Origin: Entomortierella parvispora E1425
Lineage: Eukaryota; Fungi; Mortierellomycota
Assembly (NCBI GenBank): GCA_020891255.1
Contig: BQFW01000006.1
Location: forward strand, 744,001 to 808,000
DNA: 64,000 nucleotides
Direction: 5' to 3'
Part shown: piece after piece, positions 21,387 to 35,813 of the stretch
How positions within the stretch are numbered: position 1 is the stretch's first letter
Layout of the letters: each line of letters opens with the position of its first letter
The notes under the pieces: generated by a model
The model's input: the letters and a program-made list of their open reading frames with translations, nothing else
Told to the model about the DNA's origin: nothing
Databases searched by the model: none
Position numbers and translations under genes: made by a program

Positions 21387-22311
21387 GTGTGATCTACTCT
21401 ACTCGATATTCGTACCCAGTATTAGGAACCCTTGATGATTTTTCTCTTTTGACGTTGTCCTCTCCATTTTTTTTTTTTTTTTTTTTTGAATGACCAAAAC
21501 AGTACGTTCAAACCGTCCAGAGGTGGAGGGAGAGGCTACTGGAACAAGACTCATTACAAGAAGAACTATTGTAGCAGACCCTAGATTCAAAACCAATTGA
21601 GGCGCACAATAGAACATTCAGAAGTACCATCCATACCCCTCCACCCAACCATATGCGTTCGCGTCACTTTTTTTTCTCTCCCTGAAAACTTGACGATATT
21701 TAAAAGGCCCATGTCTCGATTTGGTGGCAAATCGCAGTCATCAACCTTCCTCCGCTTTGGATGAAGCTTGCACAAACTATGCTGTGGTGTGCCCAACCAC
21801 ATCGTGCAGAGGGGTCGGCTTGAATAGCGACAATAGTGACGAGTCTTCGTCCCACAAGGGGATCCTCCTGACTCCGAGGATACTTCTGTGGCACAAGGCA
21901 CCGAAGACATCATTCAGCGATCTTTTCTACTTTGACAACAAAACACCACAACGGCCACGGAGAAAAAGGAGAAAAATAAATTGAGGTACTGCCTCCGTCG
22001 CGTTCTTTCTGTCGTCTTTCATATCTGTGGCTCGCGTTCATTCTTTAACGCCTTCCTTCCAACTTGTTTTTTTCCTTTCTCGCATCCTCTCTAGGTCTGA
22101 ATTAGCCGCAACATGCCTCTTTTACTAGTATAAGAGCAGCCATGGTTTTTCTACCGTTCGTCTCTCGTCTCGGATCTATGTCCAAAAACACCACTTTGAT
22201 ACGCCCTCACATCACTCATTCTCTACCATCAAACTGCCTTTGCCCCACGGCCACCCTTCTTCAGCTTTACCCTCCACACCACAGAATCAAAACGAACCTC
22301 CAAAACCCGAC

Positions 22312-25215
22312 ATGATTCTCAACAGTTTTCTCTTACAACAGGACGCCTTCCGCAAAACCCTCCATCCAGAGACCGAGGACCTTGACCCCTTCACCAAAAT
22401 TGAAGTCTGGGAGCATATAGAATTGCGCAAACTCTGGTTCACATACATCCGCGACCGATGGACCTACCCCTCAAACCTCTACTTTACCGAGGCCATCACT
22501 TATTTTCTCCATGGACACTGTCACGGATCTGCAGAGGCACCCTTGGATGACAACGCTGCAACAATGGTCCGGCTCGATAACCTATGGGCAGAATACAGGG
22601 ACTCTTTCCCTTTTATTAACGACAATGGGACGCTCCTTCGCATACACCGACAGGCCAATCAGCAAGCCATGGACGACGTCTTGACCATGTTGCAAGCCCT
22701 GCACGGGATATGTGAGGATCAGGACGTCTTTGACAAATACGCAGACAACCTCGGGTTGATTGGCAAGTACAGAGATCTCCCGTTGATATGGAAACGCTAC
22801 CCCGACAACCGCTTCTACGCCCTTGGTCCCTCGGATGGAAGTGCAAACTCGGATGAGGCAGAGAATCAGGAGGATGGGGAGAATGGTGAAGATGACGACG
22901 ACAACGAAAATGGCCATGGTGGCGGCCGTCCTCGCAGCAATCGATATGGCAACAGACATCACATTGCTAGTCGACGCCGCTCCTGCGACCTCTACTACGA
23001 CGCTCCCAGCAGCAGCCAGCACCGTCCACCCCCTGTCACTCACCAAGCCGGGGTGTCGCACAACAGCCCACCTACCCATGATGAAAGGCGCCAGCCTGAA
23101 TATGAAGGCGACTATATCAGCAATCACCAGCGACCCGCTCGGACCTTGAACGATCACCTTGACGACGGTGAGAATAGCAATGAACGTCACTTGCAGAATC
23201 AGCGCCATGTCCCCGAGGAAACCCACCATCGCCCCATTGAGAACAGTAGTCGGACCCAAACTGCTGACTACCGCCCAGTCAACCACGTTCCTCCGCAGAA
23301 TCATACAGTGGACACCAGACTCGATTTACACGATAACAGCCAACAGAACCATACTCCCTGTCAAGAACAGAATCAGCATGCCACTCGTCCTTCAACAGAC
23401 TCTAACCAAGTTCACGCCCAAAGCTTCGTCTACCGCCCACCTCATCGACCAAATGTTCACCTCAACTCGTCTTATCAGAACAATGTCCAAACCGACCATC
23501 ACTACAGCGAATATCGTAACCCTCTTTACCAAGCCGCCTACATTAGTGCAGCTCGCCAAAGTGCAAATAGCCAAATCAAACCTCACTCTAGCGCCAACCA
23601 GAGCCACTTTAGCCTCAGATTCGGAACTACATTCGATGGTCCTCGCCCTCGTAACGACCTTGATCAGTACCACCTCGGCTCCACTCAGCGTTACAACCAC
23701 TACAACAATAGTCCAGGACTTTTCAACCGTTATGGTGATCGCCTCCAAGGCAGCTACGGTACCGGCGCTGTGCTTTCCTCCACCCAACCTCTGCAAAGTC
23801 AATGCGACCCGCGTATCTCTCAAGCAGCCTCGGCGATGCAGCATACTGTCAATATCAGCAACGCTCGTAGAGTCTACTCGCCATGTTGGCCCTTTCTGGC
23901 GCCAGCGGCAGCAGAACCTGTGCGTATGAACGACAACAACGGCAGTGGGAACACCCCAGCAACGGTACTTGCGATGGCATACAGCTTGCTATCTCAACGA
24001 TTTCGATTTGACCAACCCGATCATCCTCGCTTTCACTCTCAGGCAGTCGACAGGCCCGTTTTTTATCCATCCGTTGTCACCGCCAGACCGCAAGGGTTCA
24101 TAACCACGTCCACTGCGAACAATCCCATGGCGGTACAGGATATGGCTGAATTGACCAGCGGGAGCAATGCCGGCAGTCGAGGCGTGTTGCCGCCGGAGGT
24201 GGGCAATCAAGCTCATGAGAACGACGAGGGCCGACAAAGCAGTGGCAACGGCGACATGATACTGGATCAGCATGAAGGGTGTCATGGTCAAATCGGTCAT
24301 GCTATTACCCATGAAGGCGGTGGTGGAGGCGCCCTTGACACCGACAATTCTAAGGATGGTCGTGACAGCGATATTGACGATGCTGAGGAGAACAAAGAGA
24401 AAGATGTGGACAATGACGACAAAGAAGAGAGTTCCGACAACGACGAGAGCGATAACCGGAGCAACACGGCTGACTATGGTGGCTCTAGGGATGATAGAAG
24501 CGATGACGGTAGTAACGGCAGCGGCAACGGCGGTGGTGCTGGTCATGATAACGGCAATGATGAGGACGGAGATAATGATGAAAACACCCCTGGCAGTGAC
24601 AACGGCAACGACAACAGCAACAACGGTGACAGCGACGATAAAGGCAACGGCAACAGCAGCATCGATGGCAGCGGCACTGGCAGTGACTCCAATGACAATG
24701 GCTGCGACAACAGCAATAACAACAACAATGGCAGTGGCAGTGGCGTTGATGGCAAGAATTCAAACAACAATGACAATTGCCAAGGCAACGACAATGACTC
24801 TCGCGATGACGGAGACAATGTGGTCAACGACAGCAGTGGCCACAATAGGAGCAGTCAACTCCCAGTCGAAAGTGCTGAGCCAGAATCCCAAGAGAAGAAA
24901 GCGAAGGAAGCCATTGCTTCTATTCAGCCTGTGATGACCGAGTATGGTGAATATTTAGAGGAGAAGCGCAAGGCCTTGGAGGGCCCTCGGGAAAATCTCG
25001 AAAAGCGACGAGCTACTCTCCGAAAGTTGAAACGTGTCGCTCAACGGGTCCAGGATCAATTCGACGAACGGGATGCGTTGGCAGAACAAGCCAAGTCCAT
25101 TGACTTTCAATTCCGCGTGTGCGACGATCAAATGTCAAAGGTTCTCCTCGACATATCCATGTCCAACACGTACATGTCCTCCGCTCTGAAGAGAAAACGA
25201 GGTCAGGAGCAATAG
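22312..25215 (+). CDS. Hypothetical protein, paralogue B; N/D/G/S-rich region and C-terminal coiled coil with KRKR
   Basis: Intronless ORF (track start 22240 is TTG; ATG at 22312 aligns with the MI starts of the paralogues). Confidence 0.78.
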   Translation: MILNSFLLQQDAFRKTLHPETEDLDPFTKIEVWEHIELRKLWFTYIRDRWTYPSNLYFTEAITYFLHGHCHGSAEAPLDDNAATMVRLDNLWAEYRDSFPFINDNGTLLRIHRQANQQAMDDVLTMLQALHGICEDQDVFDKYADNLGLIGKYRDLPLIWKRYPDNRFYALGPSDGSANSDEAENQEDGENGEDDDDNENGHGGGRPRSNRYGNRHHIASRRRSCDLYYDAPSSSQHRPPPVTHQAGVSHNSPPTHDERRQPEYEGDYISNHQRPARTLNDHLDDGENSNERHLQNQRHVPEETHHRPIENSSRTQTADYRPVNHVPPQNHTVDTRLDLHDNSQQNHTPCQEQNQHATRPSTDSNQVHAQSFVYRPPHRPNVHLNSSYQNNVQTDHHYSEYRNPLYQAAYISAARQSANSQIKPHSSANQSHFSLRFGTTFDGPRPRNDLDQYHLGSTQRYNHYNNSPGLFNRYGDRLQGSYGTGAVLSSTQPLQSQCDPRISQAASAMQHTVNISNARRVYSPCWPFLAPAAAEPVRMNDNNGSGNTPATVLAMAYSLLSQRFRFDQPDHPRFHSQAVDRPVFYPSVVTARPQGFITTSTANNPMAVQDMAELTSGSNAGSRGVLPPEVGNQAHENDEGRQSSGNGDMILDQHEGCHGQIGHAITHEGGGGGALDTDNSKDGRDSDIDDAEENKEKDVDNDDKEESSDNDESDNRSNTADYGGSRDDRSDDGSNGSGNGGGAGHDNGNDEDGDNDENTPGSDNGNDNSNNGDSDDKGNGNSSIDGSGTGSDSNDNGCDNSNNNNNGSGSGVDGKNSNNNDNCQGNDNDSRDDGDNVVNDSSGHNRSSQLPVESAEPESQEKKAKEAIASIQPVMTEYGEYLEEKRKALEGPRENLEKRRATLRKLKRVAQRVQDQFDERDALAEQAKSIDFQFRVCDDQMSKVLLDISMSNTYMSSALKRKRGQEQ

Positions 25216-25527
25216 GGCCATCAGTATTTCCCCCCTTTTTCATTGTCTTACAACTCTTCAACATACATACAATATTTATTTCTTAATAAACAGTCGAAAC
25301 ATATATAATGTGGAACGCCTTCACCATTGGCCGCGATGAACATCCTCAAAGTAAAACGAGAACAAAAAAATGGCCCACAATTCAGAAGCTGTTGTCCCAT
25401 AGTGGACAAAATTTCTTTATCGCCGAGAAAGCGCGAGTGCCCTTCAAACCTCACTCTTCCACGATGGCTCCAAATTGCCGCAACAGAATGGACCTCACTC
25501 ACGAAAACTATCCATAAATCCCCCGTC

Positions 25528-25592
25528 CTTCTCTCGTTTCCTTCTCTCGTTTCCTTTTCTCGTTTCCTTTTCTCGTTTCCTTTTCTCGTTTC
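25528..25592. repeat. 13-bp tandem repeat CTT(C/T)TCTCGTTTC x5
   Basis: Five contiguous units read directly. Confidence 0.9.
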
Positions 25593-25811
25593 CCTCTTTT
25601 CCTTTCTCGTCGTCATACCCTCACCCTCAACTCCCCATATACATGGCCGTGGTCTCCCAAATCTTGGGATTTCAAGAAGACAATCTCCACTCTCAATCAC
25701 AACGCCCTCGCGGGCATTCTTAACAGCTCATCTCATAATCTATCCAAAACCTCACGCAATTGAACCCGTGGCACGACATTCAGCAACCTCACAAAGAAAA
25801 CGCGACCATCA

Positions 25812-26141
25812 ATGAATCTTCTGATAGCAAGGTTCAGTGAACTCTCCCTTCGAAATGGAGTCTCGATCTCCCATGGATGGCAGAGCCAGTTAACTCGACC
25901 GCACACCCTGCGCTGGGGCCAACAACACCAATTCAGGCACACATTGCTCCGGAAAGCAAAAAGACTAGCAGCCAACCACAGGCGAGAGAAGGCCCGAGCC
26001 GATTTGTTTGCCCAGAAATGGCTTCAGAGACAGCAGCAGCACGAAGTAGACATGCGGATGGACATTGAGTACTACGAGTGGTGTTCTTTGAGTGGCCGTT
26101 ATTCGTACTACGACAAAGACTACGATGCAATAATGAGCTAA
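25812..26141 (+). CDS. Small hypothetical protein (109 aa)
   Basis: ATG-initiated ORF downstream of a CT-rich promoter-like region; no recognisable domain. Confidence 0.4.
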   Translation: MNLLIARFSELSLRNGVSISHGWQSQLTRPHTLRWGQQHQFRHTLLRKAKRLAANHRREKARADLFAQKWLQRQQQHEVDMRMDIEYYEWCSLSGRYSYYDKDYDAIMS

Positions 26142-28189
26142 GCGAGGCAGCCAGGACTCGCTCTTGACAGTGGACCCAACTGCCCCATATGCAAACGAAT
26201 CAGTGGGCCATCTGCTGTTTATTTATCCTGATCTAGTCGAAAGACAAAAAAAAATGGGCTCTTCGGATCTGGGCTAAGCAAGTCAGCGAAGGATGGTCAC
26301 ATGTCGAGGCTGCTCATTCGCGCCCTCATTCGTTCATTCCTCAATCCTCATCCTTGCATCTGGCGACATGAATGAGCTGTTCCTCTCCCTTTTCAAGTGT
26401 CTGAAAGCCCTGCTCCATCAATGAGGGTCAAGAGGATATTGGCCAGTAGGTGCCTCCGTGCCCAAAGTGGGTTTGTAACCAAGTACACGATAGGTCGCGA
26501 TGGCTCAGACACAAGTTAAATTCGATTAGGATGCTCGGACCATGGTCAGTGCCTTCATCTCGCATTCACCTTTCCTCCTCCTTTGTGGCAAGGGCAGCTG
26601 CACACTTTTGAAGGGACAGTTTTTTGCCTCTATCAAAGAGTTTTTCTCTACTTTGCATGAACCCCTCATAATGACTTAGATATGATGCCCTCCTGGCACA
26701 ACTGCATTGACCAATTGCTGCTTATCCATCCTGATCTGATCTACAGATAAAGACAAAAAAAAAAAAAAAAAAAAGAAAAGAAAAGAGAGAATGACTGGCA
26801 CCGAAGACCTGCATTGACCAATCATTCATTTTCTTTCATCAAGTACCATCCATAACAAGAGCAGCTTCAAGTTGTTTTTTTAAGTGGAGAGTTCTTTGTC
26901 TCCGAAGAGTTTTTCTTTAATTTGTTTGAATAAAGTGGCTAAAGTAAAATAAAAAGAAGTAGATTTGAAAGAAAAGAGAGAGGGAAGGAAGGAAGGGAAG
27001 GGAGGGAAGGAAGGAGGAGGTTCGGAAACGTCTTTAAAGTGCTATTTGGAAGGTGTCTTTAAAGTGCTTTGGAGAGAGTTGGTGAGTGTTGATGACTCCG
27101 TGGCGGTATCTTTGCGCGGCCATGGCGTACAAGTGGACCCATGTTCTCGGACACCCGAAGGCGTCCGCACACGTAACCTTGGCAATCAAGAACAGAGGAC
27201 AAGTGGATAAAGGAAGGGGAGAGGCGGTGAATGTTGAGACCCCGTGGCGGTATCTTTGCGTGGCCATGGCGTACAAGTGCACCCATGTTCTCAGACACCA
27301 GAGGGCATCCGCACACGTAACCTTGGCAATCATCAGCAGAGAAGGAGGGTGCTTGGGGAGGGGAAGGAGGGAAGGGAAGGGAGGGGAGGAGAGGGGAGGG
27401 GAGGGGAAGGGATGGGAAGGGAAAGAAAGGGAAGGGAAGAAAGAGGGAAGAAAAGAAGAAAGAACAAGTGGAAAAGAGAATGGAATCGGGGGCCAAGGTC
27501 TAGGGGAGCGGGCAAGAAGAAGGAAGGGAAGCTTGGTTAGTACCTGTTGACAGCATACAAACCAAAGAACAAGACATTCAGACTCGCCTCTTGGCCGTTT
27601 GGATTCGGGATCGAGAGGGACCGCGGCGAGGGAGGTGGCCTTAGTTGTCGTGCCCATTGTTTTGGAAGGGCAGACGGTCTCTGCGGCCGAGGTCAAGCCA
27701 GGGAAGGCAGACAACTTTGGGGCCGAGGCTTGAGCAAAGAAGGCAGGCGGTCTTGAGGGCCAAAGTCAAGCCAGGGAGGGCAGGCGACTTTGTGGCCGAG
27801 GCTTGAAGCGGGCGGTATTGTGGCCGCGAGGCTTGAGAGGCCGAGGGCTTGCTTGAGGCAGATGGAGGGCCAAGGAAGGCGGGCTCGAGGGACCAAGATC
27901 AAGGGAGAGGCCAGGCAGTGGAAGGACTTCTTGAAGGCATGGTGGATGGCCAAGTGTGAAGGGGCAGCATGATGATTTGTTTTTTGTATGGAAGGAGAGA
28001 GAAGTGAAGCAGAAGAATGAGGATCAAATTTGGGGGGATCGAGGCAGTATTTATATGAAATGCGGCCGTGAACTGCTGCGGTCCCCTCGGTCATGAGCGA
28101 TAGAGGAAGAAAAATGGTCATGAGGACAGATAGGGCAGAGGACGTCGATTGGATGAATGGAGGAGGGAAAGAGGTCAAAGAGTCGACGG

Positions 28190-28402
28190 ACCATGGGCAA
28201 TAATCCCTCACCGGGGAGATAGGGGAGATAGACACGAGGAAAGCCCTTCTCTTCGATACCGGGAGATAGCGTCAAGAAAAGCAGCGTGCAATTTCCATAT
28301 ATTTTTTCCAATATCTTGGAGAAGGCCAAAAATGGCTTTTTCCTCGGCCTTTCCTCGTGTCTATCTCCCCTATCTCCCCGGTGAGGGATTATTGCCCATG
28401 GT
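28190..28402. repeat. Nested perfect 54-bp inverted repeat (28190-28243 / 28349-28402) with 105-nt loop inside the palindrome spacer
   Basis: accatgggcaataatccctcaccggggagataggggagatagacacgaggaaag and its exact reverse complement. Confidence 0.93.
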
Positions 28403-29412
28403 TCTTTGGTTCTTGGGCCTCTTTTCCTTGGTTCTTTGACCTCTTTTCTTCCTCCATTCATGCGACAACGGGCCAATCAACGTTCTCTGTCGCTATCTTC
28501 CTCCTTCATCGCTCTATCGCATCTCCCTGCCATCCTGATGACATATTTCCTTCCTTCCGTCAAGAGGCCGAGGCCGTCTGTTCCGTCCTTCATCTCTCTT
28601 TCTCCCTCTATCGCCACCTTGTCATCGACCCTATCGCATCTTCCCATCTTTTTCCGAGGGGACCGCAGCAGTTCACGGCCGCATTTCATATAAATACTGC
28701 CTCGATCCCCCCAAATTTGATCCTCATTCTTCTGCTTCACTTCTCTCTCCTTCCATACAAAAAACAAATCATCATGCTGCCCCTTCACACTTGGCCATCC
28801 ACCATGCCTTCAAGAAGTCCTTCCACTGCCTGGCCTCTCCCTTGATCTTGGTCCCTCGAGCCCGCCTTCCTTGGCCCTCCATCTGCCTCAAGCAAGCCCT
28901 CGGCCTCTCAAGCCTCGCGGCCACAATACCGCCCGCTTCAAGCCTCGGCCACAAAGTCGCCTGCCCTCCCTGGCTTGACTTTGGCCCTCAAGACCGCCTG
29001 CCTTCTTTGCTCAAGCCTCGGCCCCAAAGTTGTCTGCCTTCCCTGGCTTGACCTCGGCCGCAGAGACCGTCTGCCCTTCCAAAACAATGGGCACGACAAC
29101 TAAGGCCACCTCCCTCGCCGCGGTCCCTCTCGATCCCGAATCCAAACGGCCAAGAGGCGAGTCTGAATGTCTTGTTCTTTGGTTTGTATGCTGTCAACAG
29201 GTACTAACCAAGCTTCCCTTCCTTCTTCTTGCCCGCTCCCCTAGACCTTGGCCCCCGATTCCATTCTCTTTTCCACTTGTTCTTTCTTCTTTTCTTCCCT
29301 CTTTCTTCCCTTCCCTTTCTTTCCCTTCCCATCCCTTCCCCTCCCCTCCCCTCTCCTCCCCTCCCTTCCCTTCCCTCCTTCCCCTCCCCAAGCACCCTCC
29401 TTCTCTGCTGAT

Positions 29413-29646
29413 GATTGCCAAGGTTACGTGTGCGGATGCCCTCTGGTGTCTGAGAACATGGGTGCACTTGTACGCCATGGCCACGCAAAGATACCGCCAC
29501 GGGGTCTCAACATTCACCGCCTCTCCCCTTCCTTTATCCACTTGTCCTCTGTTCTTGATTGCCAAGGTTACGTGTGCGGACGCCTTCGGGTGTCCGAGAA
29601 CATGGGTCCACTTGTACGCCATGGCCGCGCAAAGATACCGCCACGG
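29413..29646. repeat. Two ~90-bp direct repeats with 144-bp period (mirrored at 27098-27331)
   Basis: gattgccaaggttacgtgtgcgga...ataccgccacgg begins at 29413 and 29557. Confidence 0.9.
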
Positions 29647-29957
29647 AGTCATCAACACTCACCAACTCTCTCCAAAGCACTTTAAAGACACCTTCCAAAT
29701 AGCACTTTAAAGACGTTTCCGAACCTCCTCCTTCCTTCCCTCCCTTCCCTTCCTTCCTTCCCTCTCTCTTTTCTTTCAAATCTACTTCTTTTTATTTTAC
29801 TTTAGCCACTTTATTCAAACAAATTAAAGAAAAACTCTTCGGAGACAAAGAACTCTCCACTTAAAAAAACAACTTGAAGCTGCTCTTGTTATGGATGGTA
29901 CTTGATGAAAGAAAATGAATGATTGGTCAATGCAGGTCTTCGGTGCCAGTCATTCTC

Positions 29958-29991
<34 letters not shown>

Positions 29992-30560
29992 TTGTCTTTA
30001 TCTGTAGATCAGATCAGGATGGATAAGCAGCAATTGGTCAATGCAGTTGTGCCAGGAGGGCATCATATCTAAGTCATTATGAGGGGTTCATGCAAAGTAG
30101 AGAAAAACTCTTTGATAGAGGCAAAAAACTGTCCCTTCAAAAGTGTGCAGCTGCCCTTGCCACAAAGGAGGAGGAAAGGTGAATGCGAGATGAAGGCACT
30201 GACCATGGTCCGAGCATCCTAATCGAATTTAACTTGTGTCTGAGCCATCGCGACCTATCGTGTACTTGGTTACAAACCCACTTTGGGCACGGAGGCACCT
30301 ACTGGCCAATATCCTCTTGACCCTCATTGATGGAGCAGGGCTTTCAGACACTTGAAAAGGGAGAGGAACAGCTCATTCATGTCGCCAGATGCAAGGATGA
30401 GGATTGAAGAATGAACGAATGAGGGTGCGAATGAGAGAATGAAGGCGTGAATGAGAGAATGAGGATAGCCTTGACATGCGACTATTAATCAACGACTTGC
30501 TTCGCCCAGATCTGGAGAGCCCACTCTCTTTTTGTCCGCATTGCCTTTTTATTGAGTTGA

Positions 30561-30609
<49 letters not shown>
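30561..30609. repeat. Compound (TC)n(AC)n microsatellite at the right edge of the palindrome
   Basis: Read directly. Confidence 0.9.
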
Positions 30610-30614
<5 letters not shown>

Positions 30615-30720
30615 ACACTCTCTTCCCCTTCTTCACCAGTTCACCCTTTGCACCTCTCCCAGTCGCTCTTCTCGTGCCCATCCTCTATATACTCATGTGC
30701 AATACTTACCGAGCAGCACG

Positions 30721-33116: not shown

Positions 33117-35813
33117 CTAAAACTTGATGCCCTTGAACTCGAAAGTCTCATAGTCCTTGGGGTAGGCGCCCTTGGTCAACTTGCGCTGGGAGGCAATCAC
33201 GACATCATAAGTACCTGAAGGCAGCTTGGTGGCGGTGGTTGAGTTGGCAGACGAGATCACGCTGCCAGTCCACACCCAGTTGTTGACCACCAGATCACCA
33301 TCGTCGTCCAAGTTCTTCATGCGACCAGACCAGCCAACAGCAGTGCTGCCTGGAACGGCCATAAAGCCAACAAACTTCTTGGCTGCATCAAAGACACGGA
33401 TCTCGGCCGAGGGAGTGTGCGATCCGAAGCGGGTTGAGAACACGGGAATGCTGGTCTTCATGTCAAAGGTACGACCCTTGGGCACATTGGTGAAATTACC
33501 AGCAGCGTTCACGGCCTGGAACATGGGGAACTTGGCGTCAACGTCCATGATAGGGACCTTGCTGACATCGCCTTTGAGACCAGTGTAAGGAACATGGACG
33601 GCAACGCCTCCCTTGGATGAAGGAGTAGCGACGACGAAACCAGAGTAGATGGGGAACTGGGAGGCCTTGCCAGCCTTGGGCTCCGAGAAATGAAGGGTGA
33701 TCTTGGCGGACTTGCCGGCGGGGATCTTGACAGTGTTTTGGGAAAAGACGACAGAAGCAGAGTCGGCCTCAATGAGAGGGACAGCCTCGGGCCAGCTGTT
33801 GCCCTTGGGGTACGAGTTAAGAGCATCAGCGGGAATGTGGGAGAGCTTGTAAGACTCGGTCTTCTTTCCATTGTTCTTGATAGTGATCTTGACGGTCTTC
33901 TGGAGGTGGTTAGTGTCCAAAAGGTCAATGTGATCTGGAGAAATGGAAGAGGTTGTCGTGACGGCACTCAAGACGTTAATGAGACCTGCACCTTGCTTAG
34001 CAGCCGAGGTGAAGGTCTTGGAGCCAGCATTCTTGGAGATAGTAGCCGTGTTCTTGAAGACCTTGCGAATTTCATCACCGCGAGGCTTGCTGTTCTTGGA
34101 TTGCATGTACAAGGCATGGGCACCAGCAATATAAGGAGTAGCCATGGAGGTTCCCGACATGAGAGTGTAACCTCCCTTGGCAAGAGGGTAGGTCGATAAG
34201 ATGTTGCCACCAGGGGCAGCAATATCGGGCTTGGAACGAAGCTCGCCATCCAGACCGAACGAAGAGAAGTCCGATGGAGCGCCACCGCCTTCGACAAGAA
34301 AGTTGGAGGGCTTCTTGCTGAAAGTGAGAGCGTTCTTGGGGTTCTTCTTGTAGGATGCCAAGAGGGCCTCACCAGCCTTGAACTCGATCGATCCCATTGG
34401 CAACTCGGCATTGCCCGCGAGCCCAGCCATGCCAAGGGGCGTGGTCTGGACAAGCATGCCAGCAGCGCCAGCAGCAAGACCAATGTCACCGCGACCCGCC
34501 GATCGGCAGCGGGTGATATCTCCAAGAACGAGAACAACCTTACCCTTGACGGGAAGGCCGGCGTAACGGCTGGGATCGCATCCATCGGAGAGGGATCCAT
34601 CCTTCTCAAAGATGGGAAGCAAAGCATCCTTCTCCAATGAAGTCAAGTCCTTGCCCCAGGCTTCAGAAGGAGCATAGGGGTGAGCGACACCGTCGTAGGT
34701 GACGGAGTTGTAAAAGCCGTAGATGTTGTCGAATGAGGCGACCGAAGTGGCGAGATCGCCGAGACCAGTGTCAGAGACCATCCAAACACCCTCAGAACCA
34801 TCGTTGCCGGCAGCGCCGGCCAAGACCATACCACGAGCAACAAGTTTGTCACCAAGGACGGCCTGGGGGTTGTACTTGTACGACGATCCACCACCGAGGG
34901 ACATGTTGATGATCTGTTGTTTGTTTGTGTAAAAAAAAAAGGTTCGTCAAGGCCGATCTGATCTTTGTACGACAGAATCAAAACGTCAATGTAAACAAAG
35001 CATTCAACTTACGTCCATGCCATCGTTGAAGGCCATCTCCATGGCAGCCATAATGACATCGTCACCGGCGTTGCCCTTGCATCCAAAGATGCGGTAGGCT
35101 CCCAAGGTCACTTCGGGGGCAACACCAACAAAAGCCTGGGGAGGCTTGGGGGAGGTCTTGATGTTCAAAGCATTGGCACCAATGATACCAGCTACATGGG
35201 ATCCATGTCCAAAGCAGTCCATGGGGTCAGCATCGGGCTTTGGTGCGTTATGACCAGTGTAGTCGTCGCCGACAAAGTCCCATCCATACTTGACACGACA
35301 GTTCTTTCCGAAGCGAGCAAAGCATCCCTTTTCGGCTCCAGGGGCAGCGAAAGCAGGGTGGTTGTAATCCACACCAGTGTCGATGACACCGACCTTGATA
35401 CCCTTGCCAGTCAACTTCAACTTCTTGTGAACAATGTCTACACCGGTCATGTGGTGGTCCGAGACAACTTCGGGGTCGGTGGATTTGTGTTTGCTGGTCT
35501 GGACCTTGGGCATCGAGTGCAAAGTAATGGGCCAGACATTCTTGATACCAGGGATAGATGCGATATCCTTGCCTTCGTGGCCGGACTGGACTTGAATGGC
35601 AGCGCCATTGAAGATTGAGAACTCGTTACGGACCTTGTAGTCAACCTTGTGTGAGTTGAGATGAGAATGAGCATTGGCATGCACAATTCCTTCATGGTAC
35701 TCAATAATATATCCACGGGGAACGACCTCGACAGTTTCAGGCAGAACATGGAATTTGCCGGCCGAAACCAATGTGGCTGCAGCGATAGTAGAAAGGATGG
35801 CTGTGATCTTCAT
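33117..35813 (-). CDS. Secreted subtilisin-like S8 serine protease (Vpr-like; I9 propeptide, PA domain, C-terminal Fn3-like domain)
   Basis: Signal peptide MKITAILSTIAAATLVSA; catalytic VIDTG, GHGSHVAG, SGTSMA; one intron 35012-34914 gives DIINMSLGGG. Confidence 0.95.

Follow-up and report, generated by a model that had tools for sequence, protein, structure and literature searches.

An old palindrome of non-coding DNA in Entomortierella parvispora, probably homogenised by arm-to-arm gene conversion, and its dispersed relatives

The window that we analysed, a 64,000-nt stretch of contig BQFW01000006.1 of Entomortierella parvispora E1425, contains, around 770-775 kb of contig 6, a palindrome of about 4.3 kb, and this locus is probably an old head-to-head duplication of a non-coding unit whose arms have recently been made identical by intrachromosomal gene conversion from arm to arm. 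The palindrome has a diverged sister on contig 5 with which it has its layout in common, its arms evolve in concert, and it has no coding signal. Judged by sequence similarity, it is part of a dispersed non-coding family that had escaped the earlier note on this DNA, and its arms look like transcription units with a possibly structured element.

The left arm lies at 26313-28090 on the minus strand and the right arm at 28654-30435 on the plus strand, with the unit reading outward in both; the arms are 1778 and 1782 nt long and 563 nt lie in between (repeat search). In the same search, identity was 100% over 1336 nt in the inner block of the arms (26755-28090 and 28654-29989) and 98% in the outer block (26313-26797 and 29951-30435). 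Global alignment of the two arms yielded only two substitutions (at 26340 and 26322) and one 4-nt indel, which sits in an A/T-run microsatellite near 26774 and 29971-29974. Pilon short-read polishing is able to erase small differences between near-identical arms, and the near-100% identity, corresponding to arms about 0.1% apart, may thus be slightly overstated. Along the palindrome, global alignment resolved three tiers of identity, with near-identical arms, tips at about 0.58 and a centre at 0.38-0.67. The left tip (26243-26312) is degraded palindrome outside the homogenised tract and is about 0.58 identical to the right tip (30436-30536), which is likewise degraded palindrome and carries additional copies of a 20-nt repeat (repeat search and half-versus-half alignment). 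Within the arms we found tandem repeats of 144 nt (1.9 copies), of 73 nt (1.9 copies, or 3.2 copies of 36 nt) and of 5 nt, (GGGAA)n. The 36/73-nt repeat, at 27669-27806 (minus strand) in the left arm and 28938-29075 (plus strand) in the right arm, contains a motif common to all other subfamilies. The description in the earlier note, namely near-identical arms of about 1.77 kb with internal tandem repeats and with degraded homology both outside them and within the spacer, was thus borne out.

1D Nanopore reads can include fold-back chimeras. An artefact of assembly or polishing, for example a chimeric read of this type taken up into the contig, would find some support in the origin of the assembly from 1D Nanopore reads polished with short reads (PMC8759367). 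The locus, however, is located in the interior of a 2.4-Mb contig with 409x coverage by Nanopore reads (PMC8759367), and the asymmetric 563-nt centre, the diverged tips, the microsatellite length difference and the two arm substitutions all speak against such an origin, as do the diverged sister palindrome and an entire family with the same layout. We therefore share the doubt about an artefact that had been expressed before, and consider this explanation extremely improbable.

In a search of the genome, contig 5 was found to bear a sister palindrome that agrees with the window palindrome in its centre, layout and order of features; these two are the only full loci in the subfamily. The contig-5 arms differ from each other by 5.3% and from the window arms by 12.3-12.6%, while the window arms, aligned together with them, showed 0 differences in 1307 aligned nt. 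Site patterns among the four arms comprised 114 fixed differences between the loci and 56 sites private to one contig-5 arm, with none separating the window arms. The sequence patterns behind the conversion reading come from a single assembly. Because a sister with the same centre is so much further away than the window arms are from each other, the palindrome appears to be old and the window arms recently homogenised. In the proposed course of events, an ancient inverted duplication of a non-coding repeat unit would have given rise to a head-to-head pair around a short centre, and later conversion between the arms, along about 1.78 kb, would have made them identical, while the tips and the centre, outside the conversion, would have retained the older divergence. 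The arms would be transcribed outward, and the 116-nt units within them (described below) would act as RNA. We infer that conversion and not re-duplication made the arms identical; a second, recent inverted duplication laid over the old palindrome would look similar.

Arms homogenised by gene conversion are known from primate X and Y palindromes and from long inverted repeats of C. elegans (PMC1803023; PMC3723533). As in these systems, the window palindrome has inverted arms around a spacer, a putative conversion tract of kilobase size, and an arm identity (about 99.9%) far above the similarity to a paralogous locus. Unlike in these systems, the window arms measure 1.8 kb rather than tens to hundreds of kilobases and are non-coding, and the fungal locus is a member of a dispersed family of small palindromes. 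Nor did we see a GC bias: at the fixed inter-locus differences, G/C stands in the window at 57 sites and on contig 5 at 53, the changes being unpolarised.

By their sequence, the window and contig-5 loci are members of a larger superfamily of non-coding units in this genome, family A included, and the genome search located related palindromes on contigs 1, 5, 6, 7 and 10. The units of this superfamily stand head to head, each beginning with an outward-facing TTTCATAYAAATAC. This family box had 25 genomic matches versus 0 in the control, mostly in divergent pairs 420-640 nt apart, and 24 of the 25 fell within family loci; the remaining one, on contig 15, was dismissed as a chance match in low-complexity DNA. 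In the window, the TATA-like box (TTTCATATAAATAC in the left arm) is found at 28047-28060 on the minus strand and at 28684-28697 on the plus strand, pointing outward in each case, and the right-arm box is conserved in both contig-5 arms. Outward of the box come a CT-rich leader, tandem repeats of 32-37 nt and, after these in the present subfamily, two tandem elements of about 116 nt. At the sister locus and at some 10 others, the axis of symmetry falls on one and the same point of the unit. Family A resembles the window palindrome in its head-to-head layout, outward TTTCATAYAAATAC box, CT-rich leader and 32-37-nt tandem repeats, in a conserved core present twice per non-coding arm, and in the concerted evolution of its arms. 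It differs in that overall identity to the window palindrome is only about 61-70% and does not extend beyond the repeats and the promoter-proximal region, and in that the window's 116-nt unit is not recognised in the family-A core, which retains the basal stem alone. Contig 1 carries two pairs, at about 188-190 kb and 246-248 kb, in which a family-A arm faces a B-like arm, and such mixed pairs show that head-to-head pairing predates the subfamilies. For six of the eight family-A loci the nearest neighbour of an arm is its partner; at the other two, arms are nearer to those of other loci, which points to an inherited inverted arrangement with episodic homogenisation. Taken with the divergence of the sister and the identity of the window arms, this makes an old inverted duplication with conversion between its arms, one of several options in the earlier note, the best-supported reading.

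The centre (28091-28653) is itself palindromic in a decayed form: inverted repeats at 28153-28246 and 28346-28461 are nested around a loop that spans about 28247-28345, with 28164-28246 matching 28346-28428 at 89% and 28153-28181 matching 28433-28461 at 93%. Sequences homologous to the right half of the centre are present in both contig-5 arms. What had previously been called a unique, asymmetric spacer is thus asymmetric, some 150 nt having been lost on the inner left side, but it is not unique. A search of the centre with Rfam 15 returned merely sub-threshold matches to miRNA models, and these only reflect the central hairpin. The nested short repeat could also have primed a fold-back or template-switching event, and a young inverted duplication of this kind, without any conversion, would fit the finding of just two substitutions in 1778 nt as well as the restriction of the outer 440 nt or so of the arms to this locus. 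It is, however, difficult to reconcile with degraded homology flanking the identical tract on both sides, in tips and centre, or with so many loci being palindromic about one point of the unit, and family-A loci with arms 8-10% apart indicate that the arrangement is old. We thus regard a young duplication as unlikely, and retain the old palindrome with recent conversion as the probable history.

The outermost 440 nt or so (26313-26748 on the minus strand in the left arm) are present genome-wide only in the two arms of this locus, and contig-5 homology of the left arm starts at 26749. A comparison of the arms with the whole genome, which had been proposed as a check, recovered the contig-5 sister and related dispersed loci and left this outer segment unmatched; because the segment lacks a counterpart at the sister locus, part of the window palindrome may be younger. 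The outer limit of contig-5 homology coincides with the motif ATCCTGATCTGATCTACAGA and a subsequent A-run (26728-26784, plus strand; mirror copy at 29960-30020). This 20-nt end motif occurs just 4 times in the genome, at either end of the window and contig-5 loci, and forms both termini of the contig-5 palindrome, whereas in the window palindrome it sits about 480 nt inward from the ends. A third, partial copy with an A9 run was present in the left flank at 26213-26254, as part of a 79% direct repeat of 26716-26763. In the alignment, the left flank beyond the palindrome (26105-26255, plus strand) paired as homologous sequence with the right flank of the sister palindrome on contig 5, and it is on a single side that homology between the two loci reaches about 150 nt beyond the palindrome. 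Retroposition as the source of the outer 480 nt was rejected: the A-run is genuine, yet the segment is found nowhere else in the genome.

These boundaries bear on the possibility of a palindromic mobile element, of the foldback or another type, non-autonomous and inserted whole, with the arms as its long terminal inverted repeats. Like foldback (FB) transposons, many copies of which are non-coding, the locus has long inverted arms with tandem sub-repeats (144, 73/36 and 5 nt) and a short centre; the dispersal of related palindromes over five contigs and the motif that the contig-5 palindrome has at either outer end would also fit. In contrast to FB transposons, the family of the window palindrome has neither target-site duplications nor common defined ends, its copy number is very low, and the extent of the palindrome is variable, with homology running into the flanks. 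We observed no target-site duplication in the flanks of the window palindrome, in agreement with the earlier note, nor at contig 5, and no transposase; the subfamily consists of two full loci only. The ends differ between the loci, as seen in the internal position of the end motif in the window, contig-5 homology continues beyond the palindrome on one side, and family-A palindromes range from about 1.1 to 2.6 kb with inter-locus homology reaching past them. The foldback element that had been among the earlier options is accordingly not supported, and we judge it improbable.

Using the covariance model R1, we detected two tandem candidate structured units of about 116 nt in each arm, at 27077-27192 and 27222-27336 on the minus strand (136.8 and 129.9 bits) and at 29408-29522 and 29552-29667 on the plus strand, and nothing else over the rest of the window, its Fanzor and MULE elements included, so that a relation to these elements was rejected. 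The predicted fold is Y-shaped, with compensatory changes among 11-12 diverged copies that all come from one genome. In the alignment of these related copies fitted to the model, 92.1% of cells were paired and 8 pairs had two-sided changes, a number reached by 0 of 500 shuffles; with MAFFT alone, the corresponding values were 89.8% and 7 pairs (8 of 500), with extra pair types at 2 of 500. The predicted fold works better on the outward strand (55 G.U cells versus 11 A.C cells), while the folding energies of the units were no better than those of shuffles (z 0.07 to 0.31). We present the two tandem units per window arm, which are new here, as a lead only: they may constitute an undescribed structured RNA.

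The perfect complementarity of the arms would also suit a source of hairpin RNA or siRNA, in which read-through transcription across both arms, starting for instance at the 25812 ORF, would produce an RNA that folds into a double-stranded stem of about 1.8 kb to be diced; this ORF points into the palindrome and ends 100 nt before it. The TATA-like boxes, however, face outward and would thus yield two identical same-sense transcripts, not complementary ones. The preference of the candidate structure for the outward strand argues in the same direction, and the diverged or mixed arms of other family members would make poor hairpins, so that we find a hairpin source quite unlikely. A more elaborate possibility, which we raise tentatively, is a divergent pair of non-coding units of the RNA-polymerase-II type, belonging to a lineage-specific superfamily of about 20 loci with 40-50 arms, whose transcripts contain the tandem Y-shaped RNA of about 116 nt and whose uniformity is kept by gene conversion between arms. 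Such an RNA would have a basal stem, a UUCG-type hairpin and a third helix tolerating variable insertions. The layout recalls non-coding host genes or polycistronic precursors of small RNAs, such as snoRNA host genes and clustered snoRNAs of fungi and plants, in its promoter-like box, its poorly conserved non-coding body and its better-conserved tandem units of about 100 nt with conserved stems. Unlike snoRNA precursors, the candidate units of the window have no conserved C/D or H/ACA boxes and no Rfam match. Public data for this fungus include Nanopore reads (DRA010776) and stranded RNA-seq (DRA013164).

Searches for known genes and RNAs gave no match. Pfam returned nothing for the ORFs of arms and centre, the arms having been examined on both strands, and none of the reverse transcriptase or tyrosine recombinase genes expected between the inverted repeats of a DIRS-like element. 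A coding interpretation of an apparent 11-residue repeat and a Kozak-like ATG in family A was discarded: the repeat has a period of 32-33 nt, variable sites are without codon periodicity, and indels are not multiples of three. An intron at 29186-29245 in the right arm was rejected as well, its 5' splice site not being conserved on contig 5. The locus contains no tRNA, and a tRNA-bearing palindrome was dropped as a reading; Rfam 15 matched no curated family in the window locus or in family A. Neither a box C/D snoRNA nor a hammerhead ribozyme was upheld, as within one arm the two units do not both preserve the C-box-like or CUGAUGA motif, and for an H/ACA snoRNA the layout was absent and Rfam silent. 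The plasmid collection gave no match, and a search of metagenomes for cross-species homologues with a 25-base unit pattern produced chance matches only, inside unrelated 30- and 49-nt tandem repeats.

To our knowledge, gene-converted small palindromes have been studied in depth on animal sex chromosomes and barely described in early-diverging fungi. The present family, with identical arms, arms 5-10% apart and mixed pairs, provides many natural replicates for asking how long conversion tracts are, how their edges decay and how pairing is lost. Should the tandem 116-nt units turn out to be processed RNAs, they would represent a new RNA class in an unusual head-to-head gene arrangement; if they are not, the locus would be a clean case of ordinary concerted evolution in non-coding DNA.

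A repeat search found the inverted arms at 26755-28090 and 28654-29989 to be 100% identical over 1336 nt, recovered their outer parts (26313-26797 and 29951-30435) at 98% identity, and placed a gap of 563 nt between the arms. When the halves were aligned globally, 26313-28090 and 28654-30435 differed only by a 4-nt indel, located in an A/T-run microsatellite, and by two substitutions close to the outer end, at 26340 and 26322. Identity falls to ~0.58 between the tips (26243-26312 and 30436-30536), the right one of which has additional 20-nt repeat copies, and to 0.38-0.67 between the halves of the centre, in agreement with the near-identical arms and diverged tips and centre described in the earlier note. 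The spacer, there called unique and asymmetric, is indeed asymmetric, as ~150 nt have been lost from its left inner part, but it is not unique: it contains nested inverted repeats (28164-28246 and 28346-28428 at 89%; 28153-28181 and 28433-28461 at 93%), and its right half has homologues on both arms of a sister palindrome on contig 5. Weak matches to Rfam miRNA models only reflect the central hairpin. A (CA)20 microsatellite (30578-30618) lies directly beyond the right tip.

An origin of the palindrome as a fold-back assembly artefact is very unlikely. The E1425 assembly was built from 409x Nanopore reads and polished with Nanopolish and Pilon (PMC8759367), and a 4.3-kb structure in the interior of a 2.4-Mb contig would thus be easily spanned by reads. 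Further points against an artefact are the asymmetry of the centre, the divergence of the tips, the unequal length of the microsatellite in the two arms, and the fact that diverged sister copies exist; the doubt expressed about it beforehand was justified. Short-read polishing could have removed a few true differences between the arms.

The arms do not look coding: ORFs on either strand gave no Pfam match, and neither a tRNA nor an Rfam family was detected in the arms. Going outward from the centre, the first feature of each arm is a TATA-like box (28047-28060 on the minus strand, 28684-28697 on the plus strand), followed by a CT-rich leader and then by a tandem repeat of 36/73 nt (27669-27806; 28938-29075). 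After a run of (GGGAA)n / (CTTCC)n there are two units of 144 nt in tandem (27074-27343, with a mirror copy in the other arm), and the outer part, which is AT-rich, ends in an A/T-run adjoining the motif ATCCTGATCTGATCTACAGA (26728-26747; 30001-20). Outward transcription of each arm may start at its own TATA-like box, and the 116-nt units, candidate structured elements present in tandem twice per arm, might then be freed as RNA. The two transcripts of such a divergent pair would be identical, not complementary, so a hairpin RNA could arise only if transcription ran on through the centre, for example out of the ORF at 25812-26141. The latter has 109 codons and no Pfam match, and a 13-nt tandem repeat, TCCTTCTCTCGTT, occurs 5.5 times upstream of it (25526-25597). 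Further out lie an open frame of 991 codons (22240-25215), also without Pfam match and with GACAAC/GGCAAC-type codon repeats at 24594-24798, and, on the minus strand, a 595-codon ORF (33117-34904) with subtilase S8, PA and Fn3-like domains, whose listed start falls inside the catalytic domain and whose product is probably a secreted serine protease.

The genome search with the arms that had been proposed was run on the 38.9-Mb assembly of 20 contigs, with the left arm as query, and recovered another palindrome, at 1103112-1106376 of contig 5, together with many inverted pairs of 36-nt repeat matches on contigs 1, 6, 7 and 10. The contig-5 locus shares its centre and feature order with the window locus, and its arms are 5.3% apart from each other and 12.3-12.6% from the window arms. 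Across the arm region, 114 sites are fixed differences between the two loci, 56 are private to one contig-5 arm, 5 show three different states, and 0 separate the two window arms. At the fixed differences G/C counts are 57 vs 53, so that a bias is not visible among these unpolarised changes. A perfect 1.78-kb tract flanked on both sides by an older, diverged palindrome is the pattern expected of recent arm-to-arm gene conversion with edges converted less often, and a recent conversion tract of ~1.78 kb would have rendered the arms identical. These data support the proposal of an old inverted duplication homogenised by gene conversion between its arms.

A foldback-type element, the other origin suggested in the earlier note, is disfavoured. 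As that note had reported for the window locus, no target-site duplication flanks it, and the same holds for the contig-5 locus. Homology between the loci ends at A/T-runs (26749 and 29999), and the outermost ~440 nt of each window arm had no other genomic occurrence in the left-arm search. The 20-nt end motif ATCCTGATCTGATCTACAGA, with only 4 occurrences in the genome, is terminal on contig 5 but ~480 nt internal to the window palindrome. The motif recurs, as a third and partial copy, in the ~150 nt of left flank at 26105-26255, a stretch homologous to the contig-5 right flank. Given this one-flank homology and the position of the motif, the two loci look like a segmental duplication with insertion/deletion between direct repeats, rather than two insertions of a fixed-end element. 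In related palindromes elsewhere in the genome (family A), palindrome extent varies and homology between loci runs beyond the palindrome; the window palindrome thus does not show the features that define foldback transposons.

Self-comparison showed that 10 of 11 fetched loci are palindromes, with arms of ~0.6-2.4 kb. Eight of the palindromic loci make up the close group of family A (82-93% identity between loci), the core of which occurs in 27 copies, arranged as 10 inverted pairs plus 7 arms that appear to be single, and is non-coding, with no codon periodicity and with indels not in threes. The partner arm is the nearest neighbour at six of the eight loci, while at the other two each arm is nearer to an arm elsewhere and 90-92% identical to its own partner, which makes the inverted arrangement an inherited one and homogenisation episodic. 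Judged by sequence, the window and contig-5 loci form a separate subfamily, B, which resembles A only in the promoter-proximal region and the short tandem repeats (~61-70% identity). The two subfamilies are tied together by a common 14-mer, TTTCATAYAAATAC, with 25 genomic matches vs 0 in a reversed control; 24 of these lie within A/B-type palindrome loci, where most of them form divergent pairs spaced by 420-640 nt, and the 25th is a chance match outside the family loci. On contig 1, two family-A arms classed as "single" (~188-190 kb and ~246-248 kb) in fact face a B-like arm and are not truly unpaired. In these mixed pairs (~186000-191000 and 244500-250500) the left arm is family A and the shorter right arm combines one 116-nt unit with a promoter-like region or 36-nt repeats, which implies that head-to-head pairing predates the subfamily split. 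A third subfamily, on contig 7 (2117500-2123500; arms of 1334 nt, 98.7% identity), consists mostly of long 36-nt-repeat arrays. The analysis shows that the two non-coding units of the window locus stand head to head by inheritance, that its arms evolve in concert, and that its layout is common to the superfamily.

Lastly, the 144-nt repeats were compared with diverged copies on contig 5, contig 7 (2537, 2542 and 2788 kb) and contig 1 (190 and 248 kb), and stems were found to be kept through paired changes. RNAalifold predicted from 7 copies a Y-shaped fold, of which the basal stem is long and interrupted, the hairpin has 8 bp and often a UUCG closure, and the third helix bears an additional hairpin in some of the copies. 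R1, a covariance model made from this alignment, found 13 copies genome-wide, 4 of them in the window (27077-27192, 27222-27336, 29408-29522 and 29552-29667) and none in the third-subfamily palindrome on contig 7. Standard pairs form in 92.1% of cells in the model-fitted alignment and 89.8% in a MAFFT-only alignment, compared with 27-49% and 30-50% after sliding the 3' partner by 1-3 columns; 8 and 7 pairs, respectively, are changed on both sides (reached by 0/500 and 8/500 shuffles), and 29 and 27 further pair types occur (0/500 and 2/500). G.U pairs outnumber A.C (55 vs 11 cells), so that the fold holds at 92% when read outward, against 79% on the opposite strand, in agreement with the outward-pointing TATA-like boxes. 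From the window to contig 5, divergence is 5.2-7.8% in the 116-nt units and 5.8-7.3% in the 36-nt repeats, a conservation about double the arm average, and it is 23% in the CT-rich stretch; in scattered copies, homology is limited to the 116-nt unit itself. The contig 7 copies at 2537-2542 kb have an extra outer stem, GGAUG ... CAUC, around the unit and, after it, the motif ACATCGG..ACTGGTA, which also closes each family-A core unit and thereby links the two types. That the 116-nt unit is an undescribed structured RNA is nonetheless a lead rather than a finding, and a rather doubtful one, because its folding energy is no better than that of shuffled sequences (z 0.07 to 0.31), all copies come from a single genome, family A retains the basal stem and nothing more, and a metagenome scan with the unit pattern gave chance matches only. 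Two such matches, Ga0065710_10025376 and Ga0065711_1019540, are contigs made almost wholly of 30-nt and 49-nt CCATGG-rich tandem repeats, unrelated to the fungal family.

In summary, the structure is a palindrome, probably homogenised by gene conversion, which is of an already known kind, and belongs to a genome-specific non-coding family; what is added is the link between subfamilies A and B, the evidence for ancestral pairing, and a testable candidate RNA.
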